Source: Gekko japonicus (Eukaryota). Taken from it: 64,000 nucleotides of DNA. The notes beneath the pieces are model-generated. The model was not told the DNA's origin. It made no database searches and worked only from the letters and a program-made list of their open reading frames with translations. The translations under genes were made by a program, and so were the position numbers. Of the stretch, positions 3,367 through 62,681 are shown in pieces. The stretch is from positions 1 through 64,000 of the forward strand of contig NW_015171648.1 in assembly GCF_001447785.1 (NCBI RefSeq). Reading direction: 5' to 3'. Positions within the stretch are counted from its first letter, which is position 1; each line of letters begins with the position of its first letter.

Positions 3367-5790
3367 ATGGGTGATATCTTCAGGATGAGAAAAGGTCTGT
3401 ACCTTTTGTTCTTACTCTCTCTGTCTGGAGTGGTGTGTGTCTCAATTCGCTATTCTTTGCCTGAAGAGAAGAAAAGTGGGTCTCTGGTGGCTAATGTGCT
3501 GAAGGACTTGAAACTGGGACCAGGGGAGCTCTCTGCTCGCAGAGCCCAACTGGTTTCCAAAAGCCATAAGCAATATTTCCAGCTGGATAATCATTCTGGG
3601 AATCTTTTTATAAATGACAAAATAGACAGAGAAGCTTTGTGTGGCCAGACCGACCCCTGCTTGCTTCTTTCTAAAATTGCACTGGAAAAACCTTTAGAGG
3701 TCATCAGTATAGAAATGAACATAGAAGATGTGAACGATAACTCTCCTAAGTTTTCTAAAAATGAATTTAACCTAGAAATCCCTGAGAATGTTCCCACAAA
3801 TACTCGATTCCCCCTGGAATCTGCCCAAGATGCAGACTTGGGTGAAAACAGCATCCAGAACTATACACTCAGTCCCAATGAAAATTTTCACTTGGAAATA
3901 CAAAGTGGCAGGGGTGGAAAGAAGCATTTGGACCTTGTTCTAGAGAAACCACTAGACAGAGAGAAGGAGGCTCATGTCGGGCTGACCCTCACAGCAGTTG
4001 ATGGAGGGTTGCCCCAGAGAACAGGCACAGTTCAAATAAATATTAATGTTCTGGACAGTAATGACAACTTCCCTGAGTTTACACAATTTGAATATATAGT
4101 CGGTTTAAAGGAAAATAGCCCTCGAGATACTCTGGTACTGAAAGTGGAAGCCAGAGATTTGGATTTTGGTTCAAATGCACAGATCACCTTCTCCTTCCAT
4201 CAGGTGCCTGAGGAAATAAGCCAGTTGTTCTACTTGCATCAAACTACTGGGGAAATCACAGTTTTGGGTCCAATTGACTATGAAGAAGAAACCAGCTATT
4301 ATATGAATGTCAAAGCAACAGATGGAGGGGGTCTTTCAGGCCACTGTAAGGTCCTGGTGGAAATCGAGGATGAGAATGACAATGCCCCAGAAGTCTCTCT
4401 CATATCTATCTCCAGCACTGTGCAAGAGGATTCTCCCCTGGACACAGTGGTGGCGCTTTTCAGTGTCACAGATCAAGACTCTGGGGAGAACAGCAGAACT
4501 TCATGTTCCATAGACACAAACCTTCCCTTCATGTTAAAAGCCACTGGGAGTAACAACTACCAGCTTGTGATCCAAAGTCCCTTGGACAGAGAGAAAGTCC
4601 CTGAGTATAACGTCACCATCACAGCTACTGATCGGGGCTCTCCCAGGCGCGCTTCAAGAAGAACAATTACGGTTTTGATCTCAGACATCAATGACAACTC
4701 TCCAGTGTTTGAGAAGTCCAAGTATGAAATGCAAGTGTGGGAAAACAACATTCCAGGCCTTCTGATGGGTTTGGTCCGTGCTGTCGATCTGGACGTGGAG
4801 CAGAATGCCAAGGTGACCTATTCCCTTGTGCCTGGAAATGCTACTGGTGCTCCTGCGGCCTCTTATGTTTCCATCAACTCTGAGACGGGGAATCTGTATG
4901 TCCTGCGATCTCTGGATTATGAGCAGATCAAGGAATTCCAAGTGAGAGTGAGGGCTTCAGATGGGGGGTCTCCTCCACTGAGCTCGGAAGCTGTTGTTCG
5001 AGTTGTGATCCTGGATGAAAACGATAATGCCCCCTTCTTCCTCCACCCTCTTCAGAACAGCACATCCCCCTGCAACGAGCTGGTTCCCAAGTCAGTGGAG
5101 GCCGGTTACCTCGTCGCCAAGGTGGTGGCTGTGGATGGGGATTCGGGCCAGAACTCTTGGCTTTCCTATGAACTGCTGAAGGCCACGGACCCCGGCCTTT
5201 TCAGCATAGGAGCCCAGAACGGAGAAGTCAAAACCAGGAGACCACTGACGGAGCGAGATACAAACAAGCAGAGACTGATTATCCTGGTGAGAGACAACGG
5301 CCACCCTCCCCAGACCAGCACTGCAACATTAAATATTCTTCTCATGGATGGCTTTTCAGATCCTTATCTGAATATTGCAAGCGTCAGTCACGAAGCCGGT
5401 GAAGAAGATGGCTCCTTGACCATGTACCTGGTGATCTGCTTGGCTGCGGTGTCCTTTGTGTTCCTGATTTGCATCATTGTGTTTGTTGTCATCAAAATGT
5501 ACAAGAAAGACTCCAGTTTTATCACCGCCCTTCCTCAGTTCCCACCTGCCTTACCTGAGATCCCAGAAACTGGTGTCAATTCTCAGAGTGGATCACTTTC
5601 CCGGACCTACCAATACGATGTTTGCCTAACTGGTGGATCCTTAAGCAGCGATTTCAGATACCTTAGGCCTCTCATTCCTGTTTTTTCTATGGGGGACCCA
5701 AGTGCCTTTGAGAATCACAGATTTTCTTCGTTCTCTCAAGAGACTCCTGAGCAGGTGGAGAGAGGAAAACCAAGTGAACAGGTAAGTTAG
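3367..5790 (+). CDS. PCDHB: Clustered protocadherin beta-like large exon, subfamily A copy 1 (A1)
   Basis: ATG in GGCACCATGG; signal peptide; six cadherin repeats (PE, DRE/DYE, DxNDNxP); beta-type EC6 [42 protein letters not shown]; TM; [11 protein letters not shown]; donor CAG|GTAAGT after 5781. Symbol is family-level only. Confidence 0.95.
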   Translation: MGDIFRMRKGLYLLFLLSLSGVVCVSIRYSLPEEKKSGSLVANVLKDLKLGPGELSARRAQLVSKSHKQYFQLDNHSGNLFINDKIDREALCGQTDPCLLLSKIALEKPLEVISIEMNIEDVNDNSPKFSKNEFNLEIPENVPTNTRFPLESAQDADLGENSIQNYTLSPNENFHLEIQSGRGGKKHLDLVLEKPLDREKEAHVGLTLTAVDGGLPQRTGTVQININVLDSNDNFPEFTQFEYIVGLKENSPRDTLVLKVEARDLDFGSNAQITFSFHQVPEEISQLFYLHQTTGEITVLGPIDYEEETSYYMNVKATDGGGLSGHCKVLVEIEDENDNAPEVSLISISSTVQEDSPLDTVVALFSVTDQDSGENSRTSCSIDTNLPFMLKATGSNNYQLVIQSPLDREKVPEYNVTITATDRGSPRRASRRTITVLISDINDNSPVFEKSKYEMQVWENNIPGLLMGLVRAVDLDVEQNAKVTYSLVPGNATGAPAASYVSINSETGNLYVLRSLDYEQIKEFQVRVRASDGGSPPLSSEAVVRVVILDENDNAPFFLHPLQNSTSPCNELVPKSVEAGYLVAKVVAVDGDSGQNSWLSYELLKATDPGLFSIGAQNGEVKTRRPLTERDTNKQRLIILVRDNGHPPQTSTATLNILLMDGFSDPYLNIASVSHEAGEEDGSLTMYLVICLAAVSFVFLICIIVFVVIKMYKKDSSFITALPQFPPALPEIPETGVNSQSGSLSRTYQYDVCLTGGSLSSDFRYLRPLIPVFSMGDPSAFENHRFSSFSQETPEQVERGKPSEQVS

Positions 5791-62681: not shown

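Follow-up and report, generated by a model that had tools for sequence, protein, structure and literature searches.

Beta-type protocadherin exons of a gecko are probably variable exons for a short shared constant exon

Eight large exons of the beta-protocadherin type lie in a single stretch of Gekko japonicus DNA (the window, i.e. the whole 64-kb stretch that was analysed; 43% G+C with three runs of N), and each of them ends in a 5' splice donor. Where do these donors lead? Beta transcripts of the mouse are unspliced and polyadenylated (Hirano 2012, PMC3431597), and reviews describe beta as lacking a constant region, leaving it open whether splicing to gamma or a set of own constant exons was lost (PMC7811963). 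A 2009 study of the anole, which was queried with mammalian constant exons, stated that beta has no constant exons and confirmed splicing only for delta, alpha and gamma (PMC2764143). A preliminary description of the window proposed that the gecko exons join a shared constant region, possibly that of gamma. The first half of this proposal is supported by comparison, with 91 orthologous lizard and turtle models that carry one tail, while gamma as the partner is not. We consider it probable, from comparison of sequences and gene models, that the eight open reading frames are variable first exons of a reptile beta-type array and are spliced to a short beta-specific constant exon.

All eight large reading frames of the window are located on the + strand, as in a tandem array of one orientation, in the order A-B-C, A-B-C, A-B. 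Pfam analysis finds an N-terminal Cadherin_2 domain, five further Cadherin domains and Cadherin_C_2 in single reading frames for each exon. This is the content of a clustered-protocadherin variable exon, with six cadherin repeats and a cytoplasmic segment encoded by one large exon. Only beta-type exons are present in the window. They fall into three paralogue types, with A starting at 3367, 25120 and 52861, B at 10713, 38097 and 60252, and C at 19015 and 48017 (the slash marks the exon end):

3367..5781, + strand: exon A1, 805 codons; donor CAG/GTAAGT at 5779-5787; used by the NCBI Gekko japonicus model P0171
10713..13130, + strand: exon B1, 806 codons; donor CAG/GTGAGA at 13128-13136
19015..21420, + strand: exon C1, 802 codons; donor CAG/GTGAGA at 21418-21426
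25120..27534, + strand: exon A2, 805 codons; donor CAC/GTAAGT at 27532-27540
38097..40514, + strand: exon B2, 806 codons; donor CAG/GTGAGA at 40512-40520
48017..50631, + strand: exon C2, interrupted by a gap; donor CAG/GTGAGA at 50629-50637; used by the NCBI model P0119
52861..55234, + strand: exon A3, interrupted by a gap; donor CAG/GTTAGT at 55232-55240; used by the NCBI model P0198
60252..62669, + strand: exon B3, 806 codons; donor CAG/GTGACA at 62667-62675, the weakest of the eight

The A1 and A2 proteins are 89% identical, and the four B and C proteins that were aligned are 61–63% identical to A1. Near their 3' ends C1 and C2 share ~80% of their DNA sequence, which identifies them as real paralogues and not as an assembly duplicate. 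Between 3367 and 62669 the A-B-C triplet is repeated 2.67 times, with unequal spacing of 4.8–13 kb; this arrangement suggests duplication of a three-gene block rather than of single genes. At 41084-41236 (+ strand), 570 nt past the B2 donor, a relic resembles residues 21–74 (EC1) of the B type with 52% identity; it has no promoter motif nearby and probably derives from a variable exon that has decayed. The long spacer between A2 and B2 contains a reading frame fragment at 29655-30092 (+ strand) with a weak match to Exo_endo_phos_2, a LINE-type endonuclease (E 0.0013).

Two exons are interrupted by assembly gaps, none of which was filled in the analysis, and C2 and A3 were read from their flanks only. 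The C2 gap (49160-49713, 554 N) leaves open flanks that correspond to residues 1–381 and 501–806, and the A3 gap (54810-54980, 171 N) leaves residues 1–649 and 722–805; in both cases the donor is in phase 0 in the right flank. As written, the runs of 554 and 171 N break the reading frame, and about 357 and 212 nt would be needed; the lengths of N runs are only estimates. A third gap (21457-21784) starts 37 nt past the C1 donor and is located in the putative intron.

Assignment of the array to beta was considered separately. Among public proteins, gecko models named 'protocadherin beta-16-like' are the closest, and NCBI names the orthologues beta-like. With A1 and B1 as queries, solved beta ectodomains are the best-scoring in each construct class, by 12–42 bits, and at equal construct length the best of them are beta6, beta8 and beta1. 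Pairwise identity is less discriminating, with 46–51% to two mammalian beta models and 47–48%, i.e. no lower, to a lizard gamma-B-like model. The A type of the window shares 70% identity with beta models of Anolis carolinensis, and a published phylogeny places that anole subcluster with mammalian beta (PMC2764143). Hence the beta label is based mainly on the 70% identity to anole genes that the published tree places with beta.

When the 350 nt preceding the eight ATGs are aligned, one conserved block stands out, with the core CACAWGRTGGYR. This core has exactly eight matches in the window against 0.16 expected, all on the + strand, with one copy for each exon at 250–285 nt upstream of the ATG:

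3107..3118, + strand: CSE/CTCF-like motif of A1, 260 nt upstream of the ATG, in the conserved block of the upstream alignment
10434, 18765, 24849, 37826, 47759 and 52596, + strand: six further CSE/CTCF-like motifs, each a match to CACAWGRTGGYR
59968..59979, + strand: CSE/CTCF-like motif of B3, the last of the eight, a match to CACAWGRTGGYR

As judged from its letters, the core resembles a CTCF site. No CpG islands were found at the eight exons, and the CpG observed/expected ratio inside the exons is 0.29, equal to that of the rest of the window; the variable exons of mammalian clustered protocadherins are CpG-rich and regulated by methylation. The core also matches the conserved sequence element of mammalian cluster promoters (PMC7811963), with the difference that many gecko copies have TG where mammals carry the CpG of the CGCT box.

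The donors themselves proved to be as the preliminary description had reported. The eight donor strings were all found at their positions (the exons end at 5781, 13130, 21420, 27534, 40514, 50631, 55234 and 62669), and phase 0 holds in the local frame for 8/8, with C2 and A3 judged on the right flank. A recount of the distance from ATG to donor likewise gave 805 codons for A1 and A2 and 806 for B1, B2 and B3, to which the 802 codons of C1 can be added for the six ungapped exons. Phase-0 donors thus occupy the homologous position in 8/8 exons, in three paralogue types whose mutual identity is only about 62%. CAGGTRAGW, the strict consensus, is found six times in 128 kb (both strands), and five of the six occurrences are at these exon ends, more than chance would give. 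When the 3336 GT sites of the + strand are ranked with a donor weight matrix (approximate, with textbook values, and intended for ranking only), all eight donors fall at or above the 97.6th percentile and five of them at or above the 99.8th. Three depart from the consensus, at position -1 (27534, C), +3 (55234, T) and +5 (62669, C).

The donor also marks the limit of similarity between the copies. The collapse of similarity past the GT that had been described was seen again, with protein and tblastn similarity stopping at the donor and nucleotide identity falling to background within 100–300 nt beyond it. Translation through the GT would add tails of 2, 8, 7, 3, 21, 11, 10 and 3 aa in array order, matching the earlier range of 2–21 aa; these tails are mutually unrelated, and neither their length nor their sequence is conserved. 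Directly 5' of its donor, C1 carries an in-frame deletion of 12 nt (four codons; 21409-21420, compared with 50608-50631 in C2), seen relative to C2 and to B1–B3. The deletion is located between two CAG repeats and leaves both the CAG/GTGAGA junction and its phase intact.

What may lie beyond the donors was approached through orthologous gene models. A word search with B1 returned many squamate models labelled 'isoform X1...X17' with a length of ~845 residues (~806 + 39), in which the variable exon ends at the residue aligned with the last codon of the window's exons and is followed by a common tail, ...DWLSYQ-stop. A second word search, with the divergent beta-1-like isoform P0124 as query, extended the tail to Anolis carolinensis and four turtle genera. 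The C-termini of 178 usable sauropsid beta-type models were then sorted into 91 that are joined to the tail, 65 that read through and 22 that are joined to other exons. The junction is exactly at the window's donor position in the 91 tail-joined models, and the other exons of the 22 are joined at the same point. The 65 read-through models begin with Val (GTN), in 37 cases followed by Arg (GTNAGR). The GT and its consensus are kept in nearly all of the 178 orthologous C-termini. The models that bear the tail are automatic predictions in public annotation; they come from five gecko genera besides Gekko, another eight genera of lizards, four of turtles and one amphisbaenian.

Different variable exons of one species carry the tail in letter-identical form (15 exons in Heteronotia, 14 in Paroedura, 10 in Euleptes), and this identity spans both A-type and B/C-type exons. 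Such a pattern is given by one shared exon. Among twelve representative species the length of 39 residues and the position of the stop are kept without gaps, with 23–35/39 identical residues among squamates and 16–26/39 between squamates and turtles. A different tail length is seen in the amphisbaenian Rhineura (36 residues) and the gecko Eublepharis (40 residues). The Anolis carolinensis models with the tail are P0169, P0180, P0187, P0190 and P0201 of the current NCBI annotation, at variance with the 2009 anole account of a beta cluster that has no constant exons. The beta-1-like variable exon is also joined to the tail, in P0111 (Hemicordylus) and P0124 (Euleptes), and the tail is thus common beyond the main paralogue group; one of these two models uses an alternative donor further upstream, inside the cytoplasmic segment.

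The nature of the tail is less readily defined. Pfam assigned no family to the tail of the tail-bearing proteins at E values up to 10, and an ESM Atlas search with the tail gave no usable match. The ending ...NDWLSYQ may resemble the DWR motif at the start of constant exon 1 of alpha and gamma. A word search with the gecko tail alone matched geckos only and has no bearing on other taxa. Similarly, a HMMER profile built from 28 tail-bearing proteins returned a list dominated by giant multi-cadherin proteins; none of the 150 matches listed aligned through the tail or showed a tail-like motif, and the result is uninformative for birds, crocodilians and mammals. In the window, tblastn with 11 tails produced chance-level matches only, inside variable exons, and none of the retrieved models of Gekko japonicus or G. 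kuhli carries the tail.

The gene models of Gekko japonicus itself end differently. Three NCBI models map to the window at 99.5–100% identity and use the donors at 5781, 50631 and 55234, from which they continue into small local exons:

6960..6980, + strand: local 3' exon for the A1 donor, 6 codons and a stop, in the NCBI model P0171 and seen in the model only
52662..52769, + strand: local 3' exon for the C2 donor, 35 codons and a stop, in the NCBI model P0119
59765..59887, + strand: local 3' exon for the A3 donor, 40 codons and a stop, in the NCBI model P0198

The exon at 52662..52769 sits 3' of the CSE motif of A3 and 5' of its ATG, within an upstream region that A2 and A3 have in common. 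Tails similar to it end P0179 (Gekko japonicus, on another scaffold) and P0028 (Euleptes), and it may represent a cryptic exon that recurs 5' of A-type exons.

These observations have to be weighed against three other fates of the donors. Were the genes of the single-exon kind found in mammals, they would be read through the GT to a stop 2–21 codons on and polyadenylated locally, with the donors as relics of a gamma-like ancestor. This is the situation in the mouse (PMC3431597), and public annotation contains much that agrees with it: many paralogues in every species, and many sauropsid models, are modelled as single-exon read-through, as are the NCBI models for five of the eight window exons, and AATAAA or ATTAAA hexamers are present 3' of the donors. 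An unused donor should decay, yet the GT and its consensus are retained in 8/8 exons here as well as in the orthologous C-termini, and the phase survived the 12-nt deletion in C1. Furthermore, the read-through tails are unconserved in both length and sequence, and the positions of the hexamers are not conserved between paralogues. Single-exon genes of this kind appear unlikely on balance. P0171, P0119 and P0198, with acceptors at about 6960, 52662 and 59765, could be taken to indicate that the donors are mainly spliced to small, gene-specific 3' exons in intergenic DNA. The local exons are, however, mutually unrelated and not conserved between paralogues, and one of them is located between the promoter motif and the ATG of the next gene. 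In the contiguous assemblies of other geckos, exons of these types are joined to the shared tail. On this 70.8-kb scaffold, without the tail exon, a predictor must end its model locally. Because the local exons are unrelated, one of them lies inside the next promoter region and the scaffold does not hold the partner, we treat local splicing as a minor rival and judge it quite improbable as the main fate.

A partner among the gamma (or alpha) constant exons, as the preliminary description suggested, would give beta ectodomains with a gamma cytoplasmic domain. The phase is compatible with such a junction, and splicing to gamma figures in one of the proposals for how the beta cluster arose (PMC7811963). 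None of the retrieved models has a gamma-type tail; specifically, 0/206 proteins from the two whole-protein word searches pair a beta-type exon with a long gamma-like tail, and the shared tail of the orthologous models is 39 residues long up to its stop, with no match in Pfam. Rare splicing between clusters, which had been taken as known for mammalian beta genes, is not borne out by the mouse data either: no beta product with alpha or gamma constant exons was detected (Hirano 2012, PMC3431597). A gamma partner is very improbable in the light of these results. The partner of the donors is instead likely to be a short beta-specific constant exon outside the window, and reptile beta-protocadherins, in contrast to the single-exon mammalian ones, are probably spliced genes composed of variable and constant parts. 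For Gekko japonicus itself we infer that the tail exon is present and that splicing to it is the main fate of the transcripts.

In the proposed mechanism, each variable exon would possess its own promoter, with a CTCF/CSE-like site in forward orientation, and would encode a signal peptide, six cadherin repeats, a transmembrane segment and a short variable cytoplasmic part before ending in a working phase-0 5' splice site. Once a chosen promoter fires, the variable exons further downstream would, by analogy with the alpha and gamma clusters, be transcribed as well. The cap-proximal exon would then be joined in cis, through its donor, to a single short constant exon that is specific to beta and located past the end of the array, adding ~39 residues (...DWLSYQ-stop) and hence a short C-terminus common to all beta isoforms. 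The splicing steps follow the model for the alpha and gamma clusters (Tasic 2002 and Wang 2002, to the extent that these are cited in PMC7811963).

We tentatively propose, as an idea with somewhat less than an even chance of being correct, that the 39-residue exon descends from an ancestral beta cluster as its surviving constant exon; it would already have existed when lizards and turtles diverged, perhaps even in the ancestor of all amniotes, with a loss in mammals. If lizards and turtles do have a conserved constant exon that is specific to beta, it would decide between the two models for the origin of beta. Should the exon indeed be ancestral, it would favour duplication of a whole cluster, variable and constant parts together, over lost splicing to gamma, and it would imply that reptile beta-protocadherins have an intracellular motif in common (...DWLSYQ-COOH) and that this motif serves its own function. 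Reptile beta isoforms would share a cytoplasmic end and could couple to common partners, while mammalian beta proteins have no such end, and the description of the anole cluster would need correction. The tail is already contained in public automatic annotation, and what is new is its recognition and interpretation. Our literature search, incomplete in coverage, found no description of a constant exon or tail for reptile beta; as far as we have found, the tail is undescribed, and it is at odds with the published account.

The array can be compared with known protocadherin clusters. Like the alpha and gamma clusters, it consists of tandem variable exons of ~2.4 kb in one orientation, each with a phase-0 donor and its own promoter, in which a CTCF/CSE element is kept at a fixed distance from the ATG; a C-terminus common to all isoforms, as in the orthologous models with the tail, would be a further trait in common. 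It differs from them in that the constant part of alpha and gamma comprises ~125–150 residues from three exons, against one segment of 39 residues in the orthologous models, and no similarity between the tail and the alpha/gamma constant domain is detectable with Pfam. The pcdh-gamma1 cluster of Xenopus tropicalis offers a possible parallel: the genome of this frog lacks a separate beta cluster, and pcdh-gamma1 is a second cluster that possesses constant exons, although it is classified as gamma and has a full constant region (PMC4978886). Mammalian Pcdh-beta genes have no constant exon; each consists of a single exon, with transcripts that are polyadenylated but not spliced (PMC3431597, PMC7811963). 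Unlike these, the gecko exons have retained strong donors, and a shared tail is present in their orthologues.
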